Positions 3,335-21,566 are shown, counted from the stretch's first letter. The stretch is 26,326 bases of DNA from Macrostomum lignano (GCA_002269645.1 NIVC01005099.1:1-26326); one strand, 5' to 3'. Numbers and translations: made by a program. The notes: generated by a model from the sequence alone, not told the origin.

Positions 3335-3752
3335 CAATCACCTTAGAATCGCGCTAATCCCCCTAGAATCACGCTAATCCCCTTAGAATCGCACCAATCC
3401 CCTTAGAATCGCACCAATCCTATCAGAATCGTGCTAATCCCCTTTATAATCGCGCTAATCCCTTCAGAATCTCGCTAATCCCTTCAGAATTACGCCAATC
3501 CCCTCAGAATCAAGCTAATCCCCTTAGAATCGGGCTAATCCCCTCAGAATCAAGCTAATCCCCTTAGAATCGCGCTAATCCCTTTAAAATCTCGCTAATC
3601 CCCTCAGAATCAAGCTAATCCCCTTAGAATCGCGCTAATCCCTTTAAAATCTCGCTAATCCCCTCAGAATCACGCTAATCCCCTCAGAATCGTGCTAATC
3701 CCCTTAGAATCGCGCTAATCCCTTTATAATCTCGCTAATCCCCTTAGAATCG
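3335..3752. repeat. 20-bp minisatellite (CTTAGAATCGCGCTAATCCC), about 21 copies, intronic
   Basis: The 20-nt periodicity is visible in the sequence columns. Confidence 0.93.
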
Positions 3753-3793
3753 CTCCATAGTGAATGTTTCCCTGGTAACTGGTTGACCCGCAG

Positions 3794-4459
3794 GGCTGGT
3801 CAACAGCAAAGAGCCTGTCCGACTGCCGGTCGAAGTGGATGTCAGGCTACACGAGCTGCATCAGTCTGCTGCTCAGCATCCGAGCAGACAAGCAGTTGCG
3901 CAATCCTCACATGTGCTTGGAAGCCATCGGCAAGCTGGCCAAGTTCCAGATGGACCGGGCCGACGAGCACAGGAAGCGAGCCACTGCCACCGGAGCAATT
4001 CTCGGGCCCAATCAGCGACGCTACCGTCACGAATTAGCGTTGCTAAGGATACTAGCCGTTGCTAGGCACCCGTTGGAGGAGCTGCTAGCGGACAATGCCG
4101 ATCTAGATTGGTCCGTGGTTCGCTCCCTGATTCGCGTGGTGTCTCGCGAAGCTCTGGACGCTGTTCGAGGCCTGCTGCAGCTGGCTCGAATTTTGCGCGA
4201 CTCGGAGAAGTTGGACCAGGTGAAAAATCTCTACGCTGCCCTGCTGAGACGGCTGAACAGTGTGGTGTCTGATAGTGAGACAGGATCTACCGAGAGAGAT
4301 CTTCTGACTGCCGCTAGGGAGGCGTTCTGCATTCTGTCAGACTGGTGCACAGAGCATGCCACGCCTTCGACAGCCGGCGCCACCTGTCAGTCTGGAGATG
4401 ATGAAGTCGACTCGATGCCAGATTTCGTGGAACCGCCGGCAGCTGCTCTGAGAGACTGA
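3794..4459 (+). CDS. Terminal coding exon (221 aa + stop) of the same unidentified helical protein
   Basis: Acceptor ttgacccgcAG ends at 3793. The frame continues through GWSTAKSLSDCRSKW into supplied ORF 3839..4459. The product is Leu/Ala/Arg-rich and amphipathic with an acidic tail, and is followed by AT-rich sequence with AATAAA near 4813. Confidence 0.78.
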   Translation, partial: GWSTAKSLSDCRSKWMSGYTSCISLLLSIRADKQLRNPHMCLEAIGKLAKFQMDRADEHRKRATATGAILGPNQRRYRHELALLRILAVARHPLEELLADNADLDWSVVRSLIRVVSREALDAVRGLLQLARILRDSEKLDQVKNLYAALLRRLNSVVSDSETGSTERDLLTAAREAFCILSDWCTEHATPSTAGATCQSGDDEVDSMPDFVEPPAAALRD

Positions 4460-5271: not shown

Positions 5272-5562
5272 AAATCTCGAAAGAGTCGTGGTAAATCTCG
5301 AAAGAGTCTTGGTAAATCTCGAAAGAGTCTTGGTAAATCTCGAAAGAGTCTTGGTAAATCTCGAAAGAGTCTTGGTAAATCTCGAAAGAGTCGTGGTAAA
5401 TCTCGAAAGAGTCGTGGTAAATCTCGAAAGAGTCGTGGTAAATCTCGAAAGAGTCGTGGTAAATCTCGAAAGAGTCGTGGTAAATCTCGAAAGAGTCGTG
5501 GTAAATCTCGAAAGAGTCGTGGTAAATCTCGAAAGAGTCGCGGTAAATCTCGAAAGAGTCGC
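5272..5562. repeat. 21-bp minisatellite (AAATCTCGAAAGAGTCGTGGT), about 14 copies
   Basis: Direct periodicity. It produces the LFRDLPR and NLERVVV read-through ORFs. Confidence 0.97.
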
Positions 5563-9517: not shown

Positions 9518-10518
9518 TCACACTCCAAAGAAAATTTTATTGATGGTTTCTTCCGGCAGATTCGTATTAGAAACGGCCACGGCTCTGACCAAACCTTGCA
9601 GCATGTAGTTGCCGTTGTACCGCCAGCCCACGTGGACGCAGGCTCCGGCTTGGTTGAAGCTGTTCGTCCGAGCGAAGACGCCGGCAGTCGGTAGAAACTT
9701 TGCTCCATAGAAGAAGCGAGTCAGGTTCTGCTGCCTCCTGAATGAGACGCCAGCGATGAAGAACTCGTTCGGGTCCGAAGGCAGCACCGAGCCGGTCTGG
9801 AATCTGGCGAAGTAGCCCGGGTTCAGGAAGATTGCGCGACTCACTCCGGTCATCACTGAGTACTCAGCGAGGTGGTCGAGCATGCTGCCGGATCCGATGC
9901 AGCTGCTCAGCTCCAGAAAGATTGCTTTACCTGGCGTTCTCTTTAGGTGCAGCACCCAGGTGTAGGACGCCGTGAAGTCCAGACCTGTGGGGTCGTCCAC
10001 CCACAGCCGAGACGAGACTCCGTCCATGCGAGCGCCTTCGTTCGTCCACGAGACACCGCTGGACTTCATGGGGTTCCTTTGTCCCTCGGAGCCGCACACC
10101 AGGTTCTCCAGCGCCGGTCCCCTGTCTCCGACCCACACAGCGCTGAAGTGCTCGTTCGCAGCGATCGCGTCGTACTCCGAGTCCACCAAGGTCTCGCAGA
10201 TGCTCTCAGCGGCCACTCCGGCAGTCGTGTCGTCGAGGTCATGTTGAGCAGGTGGCACACCTCTCCGAAGCGGAACAGCGCGCACGAGGCGTCTCGCTTG
10301 TTCCGTTGCACAACGCCGACGCTGCCGAGACGGAGAGAGCGACTGGACGAGAAACAGTTGATCATTGAGGCCGAGGGCTGAGGCTTCTGCCACACCGCCA
10401 ACGACAAGTTCAGGCACTTACGCTTTGACATTTTCAGCTTCGTGAATTGGGGGCTCTTTTGACCATTGCAGTCGAGTAGCAGGGCACTCAAAACTATTAA
10501 GAAGAAGACAGTATTCAT
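9518..10518 (-). pseudogene. Paralog A: secreted PAN/apple-like + LamG (concanavalin-A-like) protein with one -1 frameshift near 10227 (333 aa if restored)
   Basis: ATG at 10518 starts signal peptide MNTVFFLIVLSALLLDCNG. ORF 10066..10518 and ORF 9518..10417 together align end to end with copy C. Versus copy B, ACACCGACT has become ACACGACT. This could be an assembly indel rather than a true pseudogene. Confidence 0.85.
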
Positions 10519-10724
10519 TACAAGTGTCTTTTTAAAGCTTTATACGAATGTTTGATTTTGCGTCTCATGAAACTCAATTTCAAAATTCATTTATTCATAG
10601 GGACGGAACTCAGGATTTTTTTGCTGAAAATGTTCCGATTGGCTGAGACAGTTTGCAGCTATTTGTAGACCATGGACAGCTGAAGCACACAGCACTTCTG
10701 TTGTCCCTATAAATGAGATGAGAC

Positions 10725-11600
10725 GTGAGGGGCAGGGGAGCTGGAGTGTGTGTTGCAATGGGCAGAGGAGCTGGAGTGTGTGTTGCAAGGGACAGGAGAG
10801 CTGGAGTGTGTGTTGCAAGGGACAGGAGAGCTGGAGTATGTGTTGCAAGGGACAGGAGAGCTGGAGTATGTGTTGCAAGGGACAGGAGAGCTGGAGTGTG
10901 TGTTGCAAGGGACAGGAGAGCTGGAGTATGTGTTGCAAGGGACAGGAGAGCTGGAGTGTGTGTTGCAAGGGACAGGAGAGCTGGAGTGTGTGTTGCAAAG
11001 GACAGGAGAGCTGGAGTGTGTGTTGCAAGGGACAGGAGAGCTGCAGTGTGTGTTGCAAGGGACAGGAGAGCTGCAGTGTGTGTTGCAAAGGACAGGAGAG
11101 CTGCAGTATGTGTTGCAAAGGACAGGAGAGCTGCAGTGTGTGTTGCAAGGGACAGGAGAGCTGCAGTGTGTGTTGCAAGGGACAGGAGAGCTGCAGTGTG
11201 TGTTGCAAAGGACAGGAGAGCTGCAGTATGTGTTGCAAAGGACAGGAGAGCTGCAGTATGTGTTGCAAAGGACAGGAGAGCTGCAGTATGTGTTGCAAGG
11301 GACAGGAGAGCTGCAGTATGTGTTGCAAAGGACAGGAGAGCTGCAGTGTGTGTTGCAAGGGACAGGAGAGCTGCAGTGTGTGTTGCAAGGGACAGGAGAG
11401 CTGCAGTGTGTGTTGCAAGGAACATGAGAGCTGCAGTGTGTGTTGCAAGGGACAGGAGAGCTGCAGTATGTGTTGCAAGGGACAGGAGAGCTGCAGTGTG
11501 TGTTGCAAGGGACAGGAGAGCTGCAGTGTGTGTTGCAAGGGACAGGAGAGCTGCAGTGTGTGTTGCAAGGAACATGAGAGCTGGAGTGTGTGTTGCAGAA
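10725..11600. repeat. 30-bp minisatellite (GAGCTGCAGTGTGTGTTGCAAGGGACAGGA), about 29 copies
   Basis: Exact 30-nt periodicity. It produces the six overlapping repetitive ORFs at 10591-11751. Confidence 0.98.
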
Positions 11601-12439
11601 ACTCACCATAGAGTGGAGAGCAGAGCAGCCAGCAGCCACGAATTTTAAGAAGAAGATTAAAGAAATTGCCCGAGAGTTGGTGACGCGCCAGCGACCACCG
11701 ACTGTTTCCCGGCATCAGACACGCGTTATCAGTCACAACGGAGCACAGCAATAATTTATTTATTCAAGCGTCAATTGTATTCTTGCCAAGACAGTTCTCT
11801 GGAAAACCTACAGAGATGCAACAGCTTGCGAAACTCTCACGGAAGCCACTCGCTTGCAGGAATGCAGGAGCAGAGGCATGCATGAGTTGGGCTCACAAGC
11901 AAGATGCTGTGAAGCCTCATTGGCTTCTAACCCTCATCAAACATCCGCTGTGAAACCAAATTTGAGCCCAGCAGCTTCAAACGTAAAGACTTCGACGTTT
12001 TTTCGAAAATAAATTTTACCTAAAGCATTTTCAGAGAAAACTCAGCTCTAATGGGAAGCTAGAGTGCGTTGAAAATGATTAATAAACACCTGCATAGGTT
12101 TAGCACTAGCCGGGATAATTTTTATTATATAACTTGTATTTATAAAAAAATAACCTCGTTGCAGATCTCCGTTGCAGATCGCTTAATCAGAACTGGGACT
12201 CCGGCAAACCGTGGCCATAACAGCAACGTTTTCAAAAACCATGTAGGTCTGGGTAATGCATGGGTACGGATACGCCAAAAGTTTTAGCAAAAAGCTGACT
12301 GCAAGCAAGAAACCGCTTAGTCACTCGCGACATTTTGTGCCCTATAAAGCCCCAAATTCAGGCCCTTAATGGCGCCGTGGTACTGATCCGAAGCCGGGAT
12401 TTTCCATCTAACTAGTCCACGCTTAACGCCAACTTGTCA

Positions 12440-13790
12440 ACAACAACACGAGCAACAACACCAGTGGGAAGGCACTCGTCTCCCCACCAAGAGAGAAGTC
12501 CGCTACATTGGCGTCTGGATAGACGATGGCCTTACCTTCAAGCGTCAGGCGGCCGAAGTTGTTTCGAAGATGCACCGCCGATGCAGCATCCTCCGCGCCC
12601 TGGCCCCCAGAGAGTGGGGCTGGGACTGCAGCACCCTCCGTACTGTCTACAAGGCAGTCGTCGAGTCCGTCGCTTGGCATGCGGCCGCGGCTTGGATGCC
12701 TTGGCTGCCCAAAACGCCGTTTGGAGGAGCTGGAGCGAGCACAGCGAGAAGCCCTAAGACTTGTTACCGGCCTGCCAAAGTTAAACTCCTGTGCGGCTGT
12801 CTATAAGGAGGCAAATTGCGATCCTATTAGCGCCGAGGCCAAACAGAGAGCCCTCACCGCCATTGAAAAGTCCAAAAGAAGACGGTTAGCGACCCTGGCG
12901 CCAGATTTGCGAGCGCGAAACCGATGTCCGCCTCAAAGCTAACCGGGGACTCCGTGAGCAAGCCAGCAAAATTCTGGCCAACCTCCTCCCGTTCGAGAGG
13001 CTGCCGAACTCCTGGATTCGTGCGCCCCAGGGGAGGCGCTTAATGGCTTGAAGCGACTCCGCCTCTTCCCCGAGCTCCTCCGCCACTGCAGCAAGTCCGA
13101 AGACATCCAGGCCAGGCGTGACCTCATCGAGGAGATCCGCAGAAAGTGCCTTCCGGACACCTGCTACTACAACGATGGATCAGCCACCAGCGGTACTCAG
13201 CTTGGCGGGGCGGCCTGGATACTGTACTGCAGCCGCCATGACCTGATCATTCGTTCGGGGCGTGCTGCGGCCTGCAGATGGTGCAGCTCCTTTGTAGCTG
13301 AGCTCCGGACCCTTTGACTGGCCCTGGGCGACATATTAACGGAAGAACCGCCGAAAGCACAATCCTGACTGACAGCCAGGCCGCCATCCGAGCCATCCAA
13401 GCCGACTGCACCACTACGAACAGCCTCCTAGAACACTCAAGAATCTCATCCGACGTGCTATCGGGTCACAGCCATTACCATCCAGTGGATCCCTGGGCAC
13501 GTGGGCGTTAGCGGAAATGAGCTGGTCGACCTGGAGGCCAAGCGGGCCGCGCGCCTGCCTCAACAGCACATCCCCCTTGCGCTTGCTGCGTCCAAGAACC
13601 TACTGCGCAGGTCCGTCGGGTACCAGCCCGTCCTTGAGGGCCACCTGGAAGCAGTTTACTCGGGCGCATCACCTTCCATGATGGCACCAGAAACCAGAAA
13701 GTCCTAGTCTCGCAGGTCCGCGCCACTGCTGGCCACTGCCCGGCGTCGGTCTACTACAAGAAGCGCATCGGGACGACAAACGATGCTCCC
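12440..13790 (+). mobile_element. Degenerate non-LTR retrotransposon fragment (I group, Ingi-like): RT thumb + RNase H, truncated at both ends
   Basis: The RT C-terminal region reads VRYIGVWIDDGLTF...LRALAPREWGWDCSTLRTVYKAVV...LEELERAQREALRLVTG. RNase H motifs are YNDGS...GGAA, SSFVAEL, ILTDSQAA and WIPGHVGVSGNELVD. Several frameshifts and stops are present, and the sequence ends at AGHCP...YKKRIG...DAP. Confidence 0.9.
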
Positions 13791-14125
13791 CTGTCTCCGA
13801 CCCACACAGCGCTGAAGTGCTCGTTCGCAGCGATCGCGTCGTACTCCGAGTCCACCACGGTCTCGCAGGTGCTCTCAGCGGCCACTCCGGCAGTCGGTGT
13901 CATCGAGGTCAAGTTGAGCAGGTGGCACACCTCACCGAAGCGGAACAGCGCGCACGAGGCGTCTCGCTTATTCCGTTGCACAACGCCGACGCTGCCGAGA
14001 CGGAACGACCGACTCGACACGAAGCAGTTGAGCAGGAAGGCGGAGGGTCGCGGCAGTTGCCACACCGACAGCGACAAGTTCAGACACCCCTGATTGACTT
14101 CTTTATATTTAGTAATGCTGGAGAA
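13787..14125 (-). pseudogene. Paralog B, second part (FSSITKYKEVNQGCLNLSL...FSAVWVGDRG), 3'-truncated
   Basis: High identity to copies A and C from CLNLSL to WVGDRG. Homology stops at 13787, where the sequence joins the LINE. Confidence 0.92.
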
Positions 14126-14319
14126 CTCCCGTCGAACTTTTCACCCGGAATTTCGCCCGGAATTTTTTGCGTTCACCCGGAATTTTTTCATATTCCAGTA
14201 ATGCAATCCGATCCGGGTGGAAATTCCGGATCTGTAACGAAAGTTTACAGAATCCGGGCGAATTTTCCGGATCAAAAAGAAAAATTCCGGTGACCCGGAG
14301 TTCCGGGCGAATTCCGGGC

Positions 14320-14590
14320 GAGTGAACCGGATCTGCAGCCGAATCCGGGCTAATTCCGGGCGAGTGAACCGGATTAGCACACAAATCCGGGCGAGTGAAC
14401 CGGATCAGCACACAAATCCGGGCGAATTCCGGGAGAGTGAACCGGATTAGCACACAAATCCGGGAGAGTGAACCGGATCAGCACACAATTCCGGGCGAGT
14501 GAACCGGATCAGCACACAAATCCGGGCGAGTGAACCGGATCAGCACACAAATCCGGGAATTCCGAGAGTGAACCGGATTAGCACACGAAT
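14320..14590. repeat. 31-bp subterminal tandem repeat (GAGTGAACCGGATCAGCACACAAATCCGGGC) within the transposon
   Basis: Units at 14362, 14393 and onward, with small indels. Confidence 0.9.
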
Positions 14591-15182
14591 CCAGGTGAAT
14601 TCTGGATGATTGAACCGGTTTTTCAGCCAAATCTTGGGCTTATCACAGTAGCAGAAAATTAAATAAAGAACGGGTCATTGTTCCATACATTTTCCACGAC
14701 TACGAATAGAATCGAATTCGATTTAGCCGTCCACGAACAGAAATACTGAATTCAGTTGTGCACAACTGCAAATCGTATATTTCTATGCACTTCTACGTAC
14801 TTTCAGAAACAAAAAATGCTGACCTTCTGAATGTCACTCGGATGGGCAGCTGGACTTCGATGCTACCATTAACTTTTTTGAAGCCGTATACGGTTTTATA
14901 TACCTTATCGCGACATTGGCTGCTCTTCAGGGATCCCCATCGCCTACCTCTGATTGCATCTGTCAGGTGGGTCACTCACTATACAGCTAATTAGCTAGTT
15001 AACTCAAGTCAGCTGACTTGTCTATTCACTTGCTTAAGAATTGTAAAGATTTCCGCAAAAATTAAGGAACGACTTTTGTCTCATTTTCCAGGACCTATCA
15101 GGGCTCATAAATGTAGACAGCCAATGTCTCGAAGAGCGTTTCTAATGAAATCGAATCCAGCAAATTTGGCCTTAACAAAAAG

Positions 15183-15858
15183 CTAGAAATTAATTGCAAA
15201 TAAATGCGGTGGTGGTGTTATGCACTCGATCTTGGACATCGCCCGCATTTCACTCCTCGAGTAGCTCGCCGTCTGGAAATATATGTTTCCAGAAGTCGGC
15301 CCCTCATTTTCGGCAGCACTGGCGATTCGTCGCGCCTTCACCTGGTCCGCCTTCTTTTGCCGCTCTGCGGCTGGCCGAGATTGAAAGAGCACTGCCTGGC
15401 TTCTCGCCACGGTCGTGTCGGATTCCGACGAGCTCGTAGCGGAGATAGCTTCCAATCGAAGAACTTCAGCTTTCATCTGACGATTTTCGGCTTGAGCCTC
15501 CGACAGCTTTTCACGAACTCCGCTCAATTGATGGCCTATTAAGTACATAAAAATGAGGAGAGTGGCGAAGCAGATTCAAACTTAAGAATCGACAACACTT
15601 ATATATATACGAGGCTGCTAACGTCTTCTAGTATATGCATAAAAAACTTACACAGTTCGTCCTCGGCTTCGCCTTGGGCCCGAATCTGATCCATCATTGT
15701 GGTGCATGACGGGCATCGTGACGGCTGCGGTTGCTGCGACGGCACACGCGCCAAAGCAGTCGCTTCAATCGCTTGGGCCTTTCTATCCAAAGGCCCCTTC
15801 CAGAGAGTGGCGGAATACCGGGATCCGGTACTCTTGTTAGCAGCCGTGACAACGTGAT
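15183..15858 (-). CDS. Spliced gene remnant inside the transposon (CxxC + coiled-coil protein), two exons about 15858-15652 and 15535-15183
   Basis: Donor CTGT|GTAAGT at 15651 and acceptor ttatgtacttaatAG at 15536 define a 116-nt intron. It joins ORFs 15599..15790 and 15183..15548 in frame (EAEDELC-HQLSGVREKLSEAQAENRQMKAEVLRLE). The 5' boundary is uncertain. Confidence 0.55.
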
Positions 15859-16900
15859 CTGCTCACGGCTGGTGCAGCTGCAAACGCCTTAGACAAACCA
15901 ATGGAGCATGCACCGACAAAAATCGGATTAGCGTCTGTCTTAATAGGAAAGCTGCTTTGCATACTGGGCCAGTTAGAGCTATTTGGAACTATGCCACAGT
16001 CTCCGTCTAGACACCCAGCTGTGCCAAACAATATGGTTGGCTGATTTTATGCTTCTAAAAGCGTCAAATATGACGATCGATAGAATCATTCAGCCCGTTG
16101 ACACACTAAGCAGCTGTGATAGACTACATGCCAGTGGAAGTCAAACCTCTTGCACGCAACAATTTTTCAATTGTCACCTTCAATTGTACGGAGGATGGGC
16201 TCAGCCTCACATTACGGACGCTACAGTGCCGCCGTAAAGCAGATAAGTTGTCTCATCAAAGCGAGGCTTTATTACCCCTCGCAGGTCAGCTTAGCAGCTG
16301 CCTTGAGCCACAACAGAAGCGAGGATTGATTATCCATCGCAGGTCAGCTTATCAGCTGCCTTGAGCCACAACAGAAGCGAGGATTGATTATCCATCGCAG
16401 GTCAGCTTATCAGCTGCCTTGAGCCACACGATATGGTTACCGACCATAGTAGTCCGTATAGACTACCTAGACGTGATCTGCTCACGGCTGGTGCAACTGC
16501 AAACGCCTTAGACAAACCGCTGGAAGCATGTACCGACAAAAATCGGATTAGCGTCTATCCTAATAGGAAAGCTGCTTTGCATACTGGGCCAGTTAGAGCT
16601 ATATGGAACCATGCCACAGTCTCCGTCTAGACACCCAGCTGTGCCAAACAATATGGTTGTCTGATTTTATGCTTCTAAGCGTCAAATATGACGATAGAAT
16701 CATTCAGACCGTTGACACACTAAGCAGCTGTGATAGACTACATGCCAGTGGAAGTCAAACCTCTCGCACACAATCAGGGCGCAACAATTTTTCAATTGTT
16801 ACCCGTACGGAGGATGGGCACAGCCGCACATTACGGACGCTACAGAGCCGCCGAAAAGCAGATCAATTCACATTGCAATTTCGAGGCTTTATTACCCCTC
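15853..16900. repeat. Imperfect direct duplication (~15853-16280 vs ~16471-16910) with an intervening 58-bp tandem repeat (16281-16427, 2.5 copies)
   Basis: Both blocks start ACGTGATCTGCTCACGGCTGGTGCA and run collinearly. The 58-bp units start at 16281, 16339 and 16397. Confidence 0.92.
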
Positions 16901-17451
16901 GCTTTCCAAGAGGAATTAGCGCCGTTGACCGAATGGATGTCAGGGATTGCCTGATGGGATAGCCATTTGCTGGGGTCTGTATTCAGCGGTTTTCCATCGG
17001 AGGCTTCCTCTCAAAATCCCCATGGTACTTGTATAATGGATGCCGGATTGATTCCGACTCAAGTCCCGAAATTTTCCCGGATCAGCTTCGCCCGGAATTT
17101 GGCTGAAATTCGGGTCAAGGGAGCTGATCCGGGTGAATTTTCTGGATCATTTGGTCCGGATCACTGGAGAATTCCGACTGAAGTCCCGAAATCTCACCCG
17201 GAACATTTTCACCTGGAACACTGCTGAAATTCGGGTGTACACCCAGAATTCCATAGTGTTCCGGGTGAAAAATTCCGGAAAATCCAACCGGAACAGCTTT
17301 CCTTTTCCCGAAATTTTACCGGATCTTTTTCCGGAAAAAGGGGCTGTTCCGGGCCAAAAAAGCTGATCCGGGCGTTCACCCGGAAATCAATTAAAAATCG
17401 GGCCCGGATCACAAAATTCCGGAAAAAATTCCGGGTGAAAAGTTCGACGGG

Positions 17452-17529
17452 CTTTTGGCATTCGCAGCTGGTGCAGAAGACGGTCAGAGCTGCCAGAACC
17501 GCCGCCAGGGCTGCCTTCATGTTTAGCAT
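17452..17529 (-). pseudogene. Paralog B, first part: signal peptide MLNMKAALAAVLAALTVFCTSCECQK
   Basis: ATG lies in a ccgccATG context and encodes a hydrophobic leader. These 26 codons end exactly at the transposon TSD and continue in frame at 14125. Confidence 0.88.
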
Positions 17530-17835
17530 GGCGGTTTGAAGGATTATTTCAGTAACTATTCAGTAACTAAGGACTATTGGGTAGTACGGTGAGGAACGGG
17601 TGCGGTTTTCGTTTTGGGAATCGTTTTTAAAGGTGAAATTGGCTCGACTCTGATTCGCTCTTAGACTTGTAGCAAATCTTGCGATTATTTCCACAATTTC
17701 GTCAGGCTATAATTTTTTATCATAAAACTAATTGGTAACAGTCTTTGTCCGTTAATTCGATAGTTCACCAGCATGCTGTCAATCTTCTATGCGAGATTAA
17801 TGTCAGGGACTCAAATATAAACACTTGCGTCACAA

Positions 17836-18343
17836 GTTTGTCCGCACACGGAGATATTTTGTCCGCACACGGAGAAGTTTTGTCCGCACACGGAGATATT
17901 TTGTCCACACACGGAGATATTTTGTCCGCACACGGAGATATTTTGTCCGCACACGGAGATATTTTGTCCGCACACGGAGAAGTTTTGTCCGCACACGGAG
18001 ATATTTTGTTCGCACACGGAGATATTTTGTCCGCACACGGAGATATTTTGTCCGCACACGGAGATATTTTGTTCGCACACGGAGATATTTTGTCCGCACA
18101 CGGAGAAGTTTTGTCCGCACACGGAGATATTTTGTCCACACACGGAGATATTTTGTCCGCACACGGAGATATTTTGTCCGCACACGGAGATATTTTGTCC
18201 GCACACGGGGATATTTTGTCCGCACACGGAGATATTTTGTCCGCACACGGAGAAGTTTTGTCCGCACACGGAGATATTTTGTCCACACATGGAGATATTT
18301 TGTCCGCACACGAAGATATTTTGTCCGCACACGGAGAAAGTTT
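17836..18343. repeat. 21-bp minisatellite (TTTTGTCCGCACACGGAGATA), about 24 copies
   Basis: Direct periodicity. It explains the ORFs at 17745-18401. Confidence 0.98.
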
Positions 18344-20109
18344 GTATACTGACTTCAACCCAGTTTCCTCAGTAAACCGTGTAATGTCGAAATTTCTATA
18401 AAAATGCTGCTTGCTTTAAGGAAAAGAAAAAGATAGTTTCGGTGACTGTTGAATTTGTTTTGTAGCTCAATGAGAGACTTTGAGAACATTGTCTGCTTTT
18501 GTTTCCTAATTCTTTAAAAACTTCAATTTTGATTACGTGATTGTATTTTTTTCAATTTGATGAGCACTTCAAGAGCGAATTTTTATTGATAATTTCATTT
18601 TGCAATATTCCATTGTGTTTACTGGAAGTAGAGTGTAAGGAAAACGGTAGTATTGTTTTTTATTAGTAGAGACAGGAGGCTGTGTGCGCATCGTCGCACA
18701 GCCGGCGAGAGGCATTACTACGAGCAGAGGCACACACTCACACAGGAGTGTACAGCGGCTCTAACTTTATTTATCGTCAGACATGTGCACTTCACTGTGC
18801 TTTGGAGTTGGCCCTCAAAGCCATTAATATCACGAGCAGAGGCAATTAAGCCAAAGTTAATTTGACTGCACTTGGAATCACGCCCCCCCCCCGAAATAAA
18901 ATTGGTACGATAATTTTGTTTTGTCAGTCAGCTGAGCATTGATAGTTGAGTCTATTAACATAAAAACATTTTTTATTATTGTCGCTAAACCTATTATTTA
19001 TATCGCTAGTATTTGTGAGTAGCGATCTCCTACTCTTTACGTAGCCTTTGTCAGCAACCATATCAGAGATACGACACCCAACTCAGGTCAGTCTATCCTT
19101 GGAGCGATGTATATCATCGATTGCTGTTAGCCTGTACCACAATTCAAACAGGCATGCGGTATGATTTTCTCAACTCTCCTTTTGATACCAATATGATCGC
19201 AGAGTTTGACTTTGCTTTGCCTCTAATAAAATAATATTAACTGGTTGCACCTGCCCTAATGGAGGCTGTTGCAACCGACAGCTCAGCCGCCGCTGTTGCG
19301 CGACGCATCTGAAAGCTGCGTACGGCTTGACTTCGGGACTGATACAAGCCAGCCCTTCAGGGGCAGGCGTACAAAATCTTTAGCCTTGACAATTTTCAAC
19401 AATGCGCTCTGAAACGTGTCTATCAATCTGCTGCGTGTAAACGATGAAAACTACATGAGCCTGAACATCTTCACCAAGTCAAGAGAGAAGCTATTCTAGC
19501 ACAGGTGCCCTGTCAAGTGTTGACAACGAGATTCTTCTCTCAAGATTCCTGCTGCCTGGATTGACAGGCCTCCCCTTTATCCTCAATGTTTTCGAACCGA
19601 ACCCAACACTTCAGAAGCAAAATACTTTGAGAGGGCTCGGTTTTCAGCACGTCAATCTGATAAACAGCAACGCTGTTTGCTTACCTTTAGATGAACCGTG
19701 AGCGATGGGCTGTTGACCTCGCGACAATGCGCTCGGTAAACTTGTTTTAAGATGAGGAGGAATCCGCTGCAGTGACAGCAGAAGCTCTAGGACGCTACAG
19801 CAATTTACAGCAAAACTTACAGCCATGCAGAATTTGTCGAGTTTTGCAGAGCAAACTGAAGCCACCCAGCATGGATACCTAGCTACCTACCTACCTACCT
19901 ACCTACCGACAAACCATGTTTAGTATATGGATTCAAGACAAACTGAAAATAGTTCTTTTCGAGCTTGGGCCACTTTACGCGTAGGCTTTTTCCATCAGTG
20001 ACTCTAAAGCTAATAAGGCAATGTCCCCGGATAGTTGATTCTGGAATTCAATATAAAGTTATACTGGAAACAGACACCGCGTCTCTCCTGTTAATAAACT
20101 TAATTCACA

Positions 20110-20251
20110 AAAGTGGCTTCAGAATAAGCTGGACGCCTCCTAATGATCCGCAATGGTCCAGCCCAATGAAGCGCTGAGCTCTGGGAGTTCTCTTCAGGTG
20201 CAGGACCCAGGTGCAAGACGCCGTAAGTTCCAGACCTGTGGGGCTGTCCTC
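20110..20251 (-). pseudogene. Fragment D: degraded internal piece of another paralog
   Basis: Minus-strand translation EDSPTGLELTASCTWVLHLKRTPRAQRFIGLDHCGSLGG aligns with copy C DDPTGLDFTASYTWVLHLKRTPKVQCYIELDNCESLGS, followed by in-frame stops. Confidence 0.85.
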
Positions 20252-20254
20252 AAA

Positions 20255-20450
20255 TGAACAAGAAAAAGGTCTGCATTGTGTTTAACATATCCCTCTTGCT
20301 GATTTTATGAACTCAAGTGATCGTTGCTTCAAAGTTAGGGCAACTCAAAAGAAATTGTAGCGTCAAGGTAAACAAGCCGTCAAAGTTAGCGACATGCTGC
20401 AAGAGCCAATGGGAAACCAAAACCAATCAGAACACCTCCACTGATCAGCA
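20255..20450 (+). promoter_or_regulatory. Putative proximal promoter of paralog C with two CCAAT boxes
   Basis: CCAAT at 20406 and 20423, 130-150 nt upstream of the ATG. The block is conserved in a second copy at ~26084-26295. Confidence 0.5.
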
Positions 20451-20552
20451 GAAAGTTAAAAACTTTGATGCGATCTGATGCCGAGGCTCTCCATACTGGC
20501 AGACTCCTCTTCTACTGACTGACAGAAGCTTACAATACATGTACGTCACAAA

Positions 20553-21566
20553 ATGTCCAGCCTCCTACATCTCGCTGTTCTGTGCGCCCTGCTCTCGGTC
20601 TCTGACTGTTTGAACGGAGACAAAATTGCACAGCACAAAGTAGCCAACAATGACTGCGTGAACTTGTCGCTCTCGGTGTGGCGGCAGCCGCGACCCTCCG
20701 CCTCCCTGCTCGACTGCTTCGTGTCGAGTCGGTCGTTCCGTCTCGGCAGCGTCGGCGTGGTGCAGCGGAGCAAGCGAGACGCCTCGTGCGCGTTGTTCCG
20801 CTTCGGTGAGGTGTGCCGCCTGCTCAACATGACCAGCTCGTCTACACAGACTGAGGGAGTAGCCGCTGAGAGCACCTGCGAGACCGTGGTGGACTCGGAG
20901 TACGACGCGATCGCTGCGAACGAGCACTTCAGCGCTGTGTGGGTCGGAGACAGGGGACCGGCGCTGGAGAACCTGGTGTGCGGCTCCGAGGGACAGAGGA
21001 ACCCCATGAAGTCGCTCAATGTGACCTGGACGAGTGAGGGCGCTCGCATGGACGGAGTCTCGTCTCGGCTGTGGGTGGACGACCCCACAGGTCTGGACTT
21101 CACGGCGTCCTACACCTGGGTGCTGCACCTGAAGAGGACTCCTAAGGTTCAGTGCTACATTGAGCTGGACAATTGCGAATCACTAGGAAGCTCATTCTTA
21201 AGCCTCTTTTGGGAACTCAGCTTCATTACAAGCTATATGCAATGTCTGTTTTTCTATACTGGCAGCCAAAACTGGCTCCTAAGCGGCTCTGTGCTGCCCG
21301 CTGACCCTGAGCGCTTCTTCATCACTGGCTTGACAACCGATAAGCCGTCGGGTGAACGCCGATTTCTGCTTGGATCCGCGTTCTTGACCGAGCCGCTGGT
21401 CTCTGGCAACGGTTCCAAATTTAATTATAACGATACTGGCGCCTGCATCAAGATCGGCTGGCGGTCTCCAGGCCAGTTCATATTGAATGGCGTCATTCGC
21501 GCCGTCGCTGTGGCCAACTCGGCTGTGACTGAGCAGGCGGTGCGACAGCTGCTTCAGCAGCCCTGA
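20553..21566 (+). CDS. Paralog C: intact intronless secreted protein, 337 aa; signal peptide, PAN/apple-like Cys region, C-terminal LamG/concanavalin-A-like (Laminin_G_3/pentraxin-type) domain
   Basis: Hydrophobic leader MSSLLHLAVLCALLSVSDC. LamG-type opening GARMDGVSSRLWV...LDFTASYTWVLHLK and ending IKIGWRSPGQFILNGVIRAVAVANSAVTEQAVRQLL. Paralogs lie nearby. Domain names come from motif recognition, not a search. Confidence 0.92.
   Translation: MSSLLHLAVLCALLSVSDCLNGDKIAQHKVANNDCVNLSLSVWRQPRPSASLLDCFVSSRSFRLGSVGVVQRSKRDASCALFRFGEVCRLLNMTSSSTQTEGVAAESTCETVVDSEYDAIAANEHFSAVWVGDRGPALENLVCGSEGQRNPMKSLNVTWTSEGARMDGVSSRLWVDDPTGLDFTASYTWVLHLKRTPKVQCYIELDNCESLGSSFLSLFWELSFITSYMQCLFFYTGSQNWLLSGSVLPADPERFFITGLTTDKPSGERRFLLGSAFLTEPLVSGNGSKFNYNDTGACIKIGWRSPGQFILNGVIRAVAVANSAVTEQAVRQLLQQP

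Follow-up and report, generated by a model that had tools for sequence, protein, structure and literature searches.

Why should two genes that lie in the same short stretch of flatworm DNA share nearly every nucleotide in their middle and little more than random similarity toward one end? The question is raised by a 26,326-nucleotide (nt) stretch of the Macrostomum lignano genome (GCA_002269645.1 NIVC01005099.1:1-26326), which as a whole is called the window here and from whose first letter all positions are counted. The two genes, copies A and C, belong to a family of predicted secreted proteins with copies between 9518 and 21566. An original prediction, made from the sequence, had described them as PAN-like/LamG paralogs with a constant core and a variable LamG domain, had attributed the uniformity of the core to recent gene conversion, and had proposed a diversified recognition family. 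Our analysis leads us to think it probable that the locus is a decaying, lineage-restricted cluster of old paralogs in which the middles of the genes were overwritten by ectopic exchange.

A tblastn search with copy C as query located four copies in the window. Copy C (20553-21566, + strand) is the sole intact gene. From its continuous open reading frame (ORF) of 337 amino acids, an AlphaFold2 (AF2) model and Foldseek comparisons, it has a signal peptide (residues 1 to about 19), a six-cysteine N-terminal domain (about 19-113), and a core plus LamG_3/ConA-like jelly roll (about 125-337). Copy A (9518-10518, - strand), delimited by ORFs and alignment, is a full-length paralog inverted relative to C. 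It has a 1-nt deletion compared with B and C at 10227/10228 that places the signal peptide in a different frame from the rest of the protein, and it is either a pseudogene or shows an assembly indel in a CC run. A and C form inverted repeats (I1, 294 nt, 93%) that are 10.6 kilobases (kb) apart. The remaining copies, B and D, are fragments.

The similarity between A and C was resolved by pairwise DNA alignment into two tracts, given here along the + strand of C. The first (C 20887-21013, A 10188-10062) covers 127 nt with 1 mismatch (20996, G/A) and encodes DSEY...PMKS. The second (C 21039-21130, A 10036-9945) covers 92 nt with 0 mismatches and encodes EGAR...VLH(L). They are separated by a patch of 25 nt (C 21014-21038, A 10061-10037) that has 11 mismatches and appears not to have been converted; it encodes SLNVTWTS, with an N-glycosylation sequon, in C and SSGVSWTN in A. 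In A, both tracts and the patch occupy 9945-10188 (- strand) within I1. Identity stops at C 21130 / A 9945, and the first differences past this edge, at 21131 (CTG/CTA, L), 21137 (AGG/AGA, R), 21140 (ACT/ACG, T) and 21143 (CCT/CCA, P), are all synonymous. Beyond the edge the DNA of A and C is approximately 44% identical, which is near random similarity, and the remaining 137-140 residues are 34% identical (46/137). Of 485 aligned sites, 50 differ, and by permutation an identical run as long as the longest one observed (109 nt) is far beyond chance (p=5e-5). The signal-peptide regions are also strongly diverged (19-42% identity) and saturated at synonymous sites. In each of these respects, namely the two near-identical blocks, the abrupt edge with silent changes in the L, R, T and P codons, a C-terminal remainder about one-third identical, and the diverged signal peptides, measurement bore out what had been noticed by eye. 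An intron at the KRTP edge, where A reads CAG/GTAAAG, was considered and rejected because the ORF runs on in frame into conserved LamG motifs.

The 25-nt patch exists in two forms, NVT(W/F)TS, which carries the sequon, and SGV(S/E)WT(N/K). This NVT/SGV dimorphism is found both in the subfamily formed by the window and other M. lignano sequences and in distant relatives from metagenome contigs (L001-L007), and it could be either an old, maintained dimorphism or a case of convergence.

Synonymous divergence (dS; Nei-Gojobori estimates in the codon numbering of C) follows the same boundaries. Between A and C it is saturated over codons 1-34, 0.37 over codons 35-99, 0.08 over codons 114-154, saturated again over codons 155-162, 0 over codons 171-190 and above 2 over codons 199-337. 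The original prediction had called for a sliding dS comparison, and divergence along the pair proves not to be uniform but to range from 0 to saturation. Where the amino acid is conserved, the codon is unchanged in 65 of 70 cases in the core versus 21 of 45 in the C-terminal part (Fisher p=6.5e-8), so the difference between the two parts is not simply one of constraint at the protein level.

The fragments supply two further comparisons. Fragment D (20020-20248, - strand), which forms inverted repeat I5 and lies 300 base pairs upstream of C, corresponds to C residues ~176-247 and contains a frameshift and a stop. It had been taken for a third variant after KRTP; its DNA there is 77% identical to C and 43% to A, which identifies it as a decayed C-type fragment. 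A third C-terminal type does exist, in the M. lignano protein P0001. Identity between D and C is 88% ahead of the edge and 77% behind it; as an internal control, this indicates that the far steeper drop between A and C is not a property of the site. The main piece of copy B (13787-14127, - strand) aligns to C residues ~25-138, and its homology stops at 13787 beside retroelement-like sequence. At sites informative among the three copies, B groups with C over 20650-20736 (19 sites uniting B and C versus 5 uniting A and B) and with A over 20759-20861 (10 sites uniting A and B versus 1 uniting B and C). This change of partner, counted over the intervals 20650-20750 and 20751-20865, is significant (Fisher p=1.5e-4; maximum chi-square permutation p=0.008, with the break between 20736 and 20759). 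The copies are mosaics, and their closest partners are incongruent from one segment to the next. The GC content at third codon positions (GC3) is 0.80-0.86 in the N-terminal domain and core, the exchanged parts, versus 0.59-0.73 in the signal peptide and C-terminal part, a contrast of the kind that biased gene conversion would produce. The range of dS, the partner switch of B and the GC3 pattern uphold the idea that recent exchange lies behind the identical synonymous sites and their sharp edge, and interlocus gene conversion or recombination between the copies is well supported.

Public M. lignano proteins extend the mosaic beyond the window. P0001 has a core 99% identical to that of C joined to the third C-terminal type, and P0002 combines a C-type upstream flank, signal peptide and N-terminal domain with the shared core and an A-type C-terminus. 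A word-based search with the C-terminal part of A returned no further A-type proteins. The structure of P0002 bears on the nature of the exchange. One or a few reciprocal crossovers, or illegitimate recombination, could have swapped the halves of these genes; for instance, a crossover in the core of A and C would invert the 10-kb segment between them. The two copies are indeed inverted repeats, and the C-front/A-back arrangement of P0002 is exactly what such an inversion would yield. Yet the similar segment of A and C has diverged sequence to either side, the 25-nt patch interrupts it, a graded and older layer of similarity lies upstream, and the partner of B switches over a distance of 100 nt. 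To account for this one needs a number of short internal tracts, as conversion yields; crossover may add to the pattern but does not explain it alone, and as the whole explanation we regard it as unlikely.

Seven metagenome contigs (L001-L007) encode distant relatives with 25-30% identity. Their pairwise codon profiles contain long runs of identical codons whose breakpoints differ from pair to pair, with C-terminal parts that are uniformly diverged. These mosaics indicate that the pattern is a trait of the family and not peculiar to the window. In the window/M. lignano subfamily the cores have 91-100% identity, and those of the metagenome set are near-identical among themselves, whereas the two sets differ widely from one another. 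Five of the contigs (L002, L004, L005, L006 and L007) start inside the conserved front of the gene, which is the signature of an assembler breaking at sequence repeated among paralogs.

The metagenome pairs and copy B also bear on whether the core is kept identical by selection on the nucleotides themselves, as would arise if it formed an RNA structure, served as a target of small RNAs or overlapped an antisense gene. Two long antisense ORFs of 185-187 amino acids (20546-21128, - strand, and 9947-10381, + strand) do overlie the front and core of C and A, where GC3 is high, and stop close to the identity edge. Neither matches a Pfam family. Open antisense frames are expected at GC3 near 0.85, and the two ORFs are most likely a by-product of that composition. 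The Rfam scan of the window was without a match. Selection of this kind would also leave unexplained both the switch of partners among A, B and C and the differing identical runs among pairs of metagenome paralogs, and we consider it highly improbable.

An error of assembly or polishing is a further alternative, in which A or C would be chimeric or bases of one paralog would have been copied onto the other by short-read polishing. The genome is very repeat-rich, the 1-nt indel of A in a CC run could be an assembly error, and the gene model of P0002 shows frame anomalies as well. Against this, the identical tracts of 92-127 nt are far below the length of long reads and are broken by a strongly different patch, and polishing is unable to create a contrast of about 100% versus about 44% identity. 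Moreover, the same architecture is shared by the independent UniProt entries P0001 and P0002 and by the metagenome contigs. An artefact is thus a very unlikely source of the pattern.

What the exchanged and diverged parts encode depends on the fold. An AF2 model built on a 15-sequence family alignment predicts a beta-sandwich over residues ~125-337, with strands throughout 128-321 and a predicted local distance difference test score (pLDDT) of 75-90 over residues 150-337; modelled from the single sequence, pLDDT was 32. Foldseek returned 212 matches in the PDB at E<=0.001, with ConA-like lectin domains at the head of the list (E 2e-7; TMt 0.65 to 5hon_A). The model and these matches agree on a two-sheet jelly-roll beta-sandwich of ~200 residues. 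Seven of ten distant relatives match the Laminin_G_3 profile along its full length (positions 1-151) with 14-26 bits (E 1e-5 to 0.05), all sub-threshold, and P0026 carries a precomputed PF13385 mark. The matches begin at a position aligned to C residue ~163, and from this start and the span of the AF2 model it follows that the second tract (EGAR...KRTP) supplies the strands with which this jelly roll begins. Between the predicted strands 187-195 and 200-207 is a loop, and it is here that the edge at KRTP lies. The description of a constant core followed by a variable LamG domain therefore needs to be revised, because the edge lies inside a single LamG_3/ConA-like jelly roll.

The label PAN-like for the N-terminal domain finds no support either. 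The profiles PAN_1-4 gave no Pfam match at E<=10 for the N-terminal domains of C, P0023 and the P0027 type, nor at E<=1 for the four window ORFs, and the family profile gave no hit against PDB sequences at E<=10. The six cysteines of this domain are at positions 19, 35, 54, 78, 87 and 108, and the model places helices at 32-39 and 52-59 and a hairpin at 68-83 with low confidence (pLDDT 30-66). Each complete member is predicted to be a secreted protein of ~335 amino acids with a signal peptide, a six-cysteine N-terminal domain and one ConA-like/LamG_3 jelly roll, and the modelled jelly roll may bind a ligand or glycan. A proprotein-convertase site (R-x-K/R-R) in the LKRTP motif was set aside, the motif being in a predicted beta-strand of the jelly roll.

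Several points weigh against our reading of the locus. The DNA sample consists of 2 full-length copies and 2 fragments, too few to resolve the direction or age of the tracts. The breakpoints in the three-way comparison were taken from the data; the permutation corrects for this, with a sample of 37 sites. If a long-read assembly was polished with short reads, minor differences between similar paralogs could have been erased, and dS values near 0 would then be exaggerated. As to the metagenome contigs, they may be chimeric assemblies and may combine several species. Conservation across distant family members is highest in the core too (entropy 1.2-1.4 bits versus 2.2-2.5), which implies that constraint and exchange both contribute to the contrast between core and C-terminal part. 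With regard to the fold, Pfam gave no hit for the window proteins A, B and C at E<=1, and these do not reach the PF13385 gathering score of 27.6 bits. The AF2 model is of moderate confidence overall (mean pLDDT 65), and it is from the fold only that a function is deduced.

With these points taken into account, the history that we favor is as follows. The paralogs would be old, which is suggested by the saturation of synonymous sites in the signal-peptide regions and in the last ~140 residues. Repeated ectopic exchange, probably gene conversion with possibly an occasional crossover between the inverted copies, would then have overwritten the middles of the genes. The exchange of the N-terminal domain may be the earlier one (dS about 0.2-0.5), and that of DSEY through VLHL may be very recent (dS about 0-0.08). 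Past C 21130 / A 9945 the DNA may be too dissimilar for exchange to continue, which would explain why the last tract halts there. LKRTP would persist across the edge by protein-level selection, since it is a strand motif kept throughout the family, with codons that retain the old divergence. A crossover in the core of the inverted A and C, inverting the interval between them, could have given the C-front/A-back gene.

Is the exchange part of a diversified recognition system? Such a system (immune, allorecognition, mucus or reproductive) would have a constant scaffold and selection for new C-terminal binding surfaces, with fragments and repeats as raw material. The predicted signal peptides and lectin-type fold would suit it, as would a cluster sitting among tandem repeats. 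At least three C-terminal types occur on a near-identical core, modules have been reassorted in P0002, and the C-terminal part is the more variable one family-wide. In the closest metagenome pair, L005-L006, the proportions of nonsynonymous and synonymous differences (pN/pS) are higher in the C-terminal part (0.35/0.52) than in the core (0.12/0.31). On the other hand, pN never exceeds pS in any comparison, a test made weak by saturated synonymous sites; between the C-terminal parts of A and C, pN is 0.48 versus a saturated pS of 0.72. Differences between A and C are also spread evenly over strands (36% identity) and loops (32%; p=0.72) when sites are classed by secondary structure rather than by exposure at the surface. 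Of the window's four copies just one is intact, and literature searches returned nothing on the family. Selection and the placement of variable residues were the measures by which the original prediction proposed to judge the recognition idea, and pN below pS and the lack of enrichment in loops, weak as both tests are, weaken it. It is not supported, and we regard it as rather improbable.

A related and quite doubtful possibility is that the copies use their shared core as a handle for recombination. In that case different fronts (signal peptide, N-terminal domain and NVT/SGV patch) could be joined by conversion and inversion to different jelly-roll backs, with truncated copies such as D as donor cassettes, and so give a combinatorial repertoire of secreted lectin-like proteins for immunity, mating or adhesion. 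If expression in one particular gland, or induction upon challenge, were demonstrated for the family, this modularity of front and back would be worth a closer look.

The cluster has also been damaged by insertions. Copy B is split by a 3.3-kb insert (14128-17451) that has AG to its left and right and ends in perfect 25-nt terminal inverted repeats (CCCGTCGAACTTTTCACCCGGAATT). Its signal-peptide piece, MLNMKAALAAVLAALTVFCTSCECQK (17452-17529, - strand), lies 3.3 kb from the main piece. Once the two flanks are joined, the reading frame is continuous and the product can be aligned with P0001, starting at ECxxxITKY. The insert contains tandem repeats with units of 31 and 58 nt as well as a duplication of 620 nt; an ORF for a transposase was not seen in it. 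Its ends on the gene strand also read GT...AG (CCC/GTCGAAC ... GACGGGAG/TTC), and to judge from these ends it could in principle be spliced out in the manner of an introner-type element. Abutting the truncation point of B is a degenerate retroelement remnant (12434-13786, + strand) with frameshifted ORFs, which when stitched together give a weak, sub-threshold Pfam match to RNase_H (E=0.004). The birth and death of copies that the original prediction saw in the cluster is plain, with one intact copy, one frameshifted copy, two fragments and mobile-element insertions.

The window as a whole is eukaryotic and very repeat-rich; a tandem-repeat scan over its full length gave 44 rows, and tRNA and Rfam scans of it gave no match. 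A tandem array with a 30-nt period (10608-11717) is directly upstream of A, and one with a 21-nt period (17711-18466) is between B and D, so that two of the long arrays flank family copies. Together with those at 5272-5561, 3336-3753, 307-665 and 1018-1511, the regular long arrays have periods of 30, 21, 21, 20 and 4 nt. Outside the gene cluster, an ORF of 206 amino acids (3839-4459, + strand) has no Pfam match. The locus is a small, decaying cluster of a lineage-restricted gene family amid mobile elements.

How far the family extends was examined with a search of 1.8 billion representatives, which gave 22 hits, every named one being from M. lignano. The window's own proteins are missing from the public protein collection, and looking up the exact sequences of C and P0001 in public assemblies gave no record. 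The DSEY...PMKS segment and the six-cysteine N-terminal domain are without a known counterpart. Literature searches on the family and on gene conversion in Macrostomum found nothing relevant. The names that UniRef gives to the relatives (peptidase S1, UBC core, COIA1, MAM, ricin B) were disregarded, as domain scans give them no support. The public M. lignano gene models P0002 and P0004 are fusions. P0002 (UniRef A0A1I8H0C0) joins reverse-transcriptase and integrase-like pieces to a family member in an alternative frame, and P0004 (A0A1I8H4S8) joins two units of front plus core, each ending at KRQP. This seems to be an undescribed, lineage-specific family, apparently confined to macrostomid flatworms, under a known evolutionary process. 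What the analysis brings to light is a predicted secreted lectin-fold family without annotation or literature; the process itself is familiar.

The separate parts of this system can each be compared with known ones. By eye, the N-terminal domain resembles PAN/Apple domains in its six cysteines within ~90 residues and in a C-x-x-F-x-[FY]-x-x-x-C-x-L motif like the PAN hairpin; it differs in that the window domains are without a Pfam PAN match and the model there is of low confidence. The likeness to Laminin_G_3 (PF13385) and the ConA-like superfamily lies in the predicted beta-sandwich of ~200 residues. By Foldseek this resembles, at 9-14% identity, the lectin domain of trypanosome sialidase, domain 4 of AbnA, the carbohydrate-binding module of NanA and the lectin-like subdomain in the binding domains of clostridial neurotoxins. 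The C-terminal motif G-T-x-R-A-V-x-x-A-x-x-x-M/L-T-x-x-E-I, moreover, matches what we take to be the usual end of a Laminin_G_3 domain. Unlike that superfamily, the family described here is restricted to Macrostomum and unassigned metagenome sequences, and its members in the window stay below Pfam thresholds.

With regard to organization, sea urchin Sp185/333 and snail FREPs are clustered, recombining families of secreted immune-type proteins. They resemble the present cluster, by analogy only, in their small secreted proteins, repeat-flanked clusters, mosaic blocks between paralogs and lectin-type domain. The fold in the window is ConA-like, however, not fibrinogen-like or disordered, and most local copies are dead.

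The process has its established counterparts in partial-gene interlocus conversion and concerted evolution of the globin, opsin, RHD/RHCE and MHC genes. As in those systems, near-identical synonymous sites lie in short, sharp-edged tracts flanked by old divergence, partners are mosaic among at least three copies, and GC3 is raised. The window departs from them in that its genes are intronless and have the edge within one fold domain, not at an intron/exon edge, and in that its copies are inverted and embedded in mobile-element debris. Beside these systems the window stands as a clean, small-scale case of partial concerted evolution, with its edge within one protein domain and direct evidence of reassorted halves.

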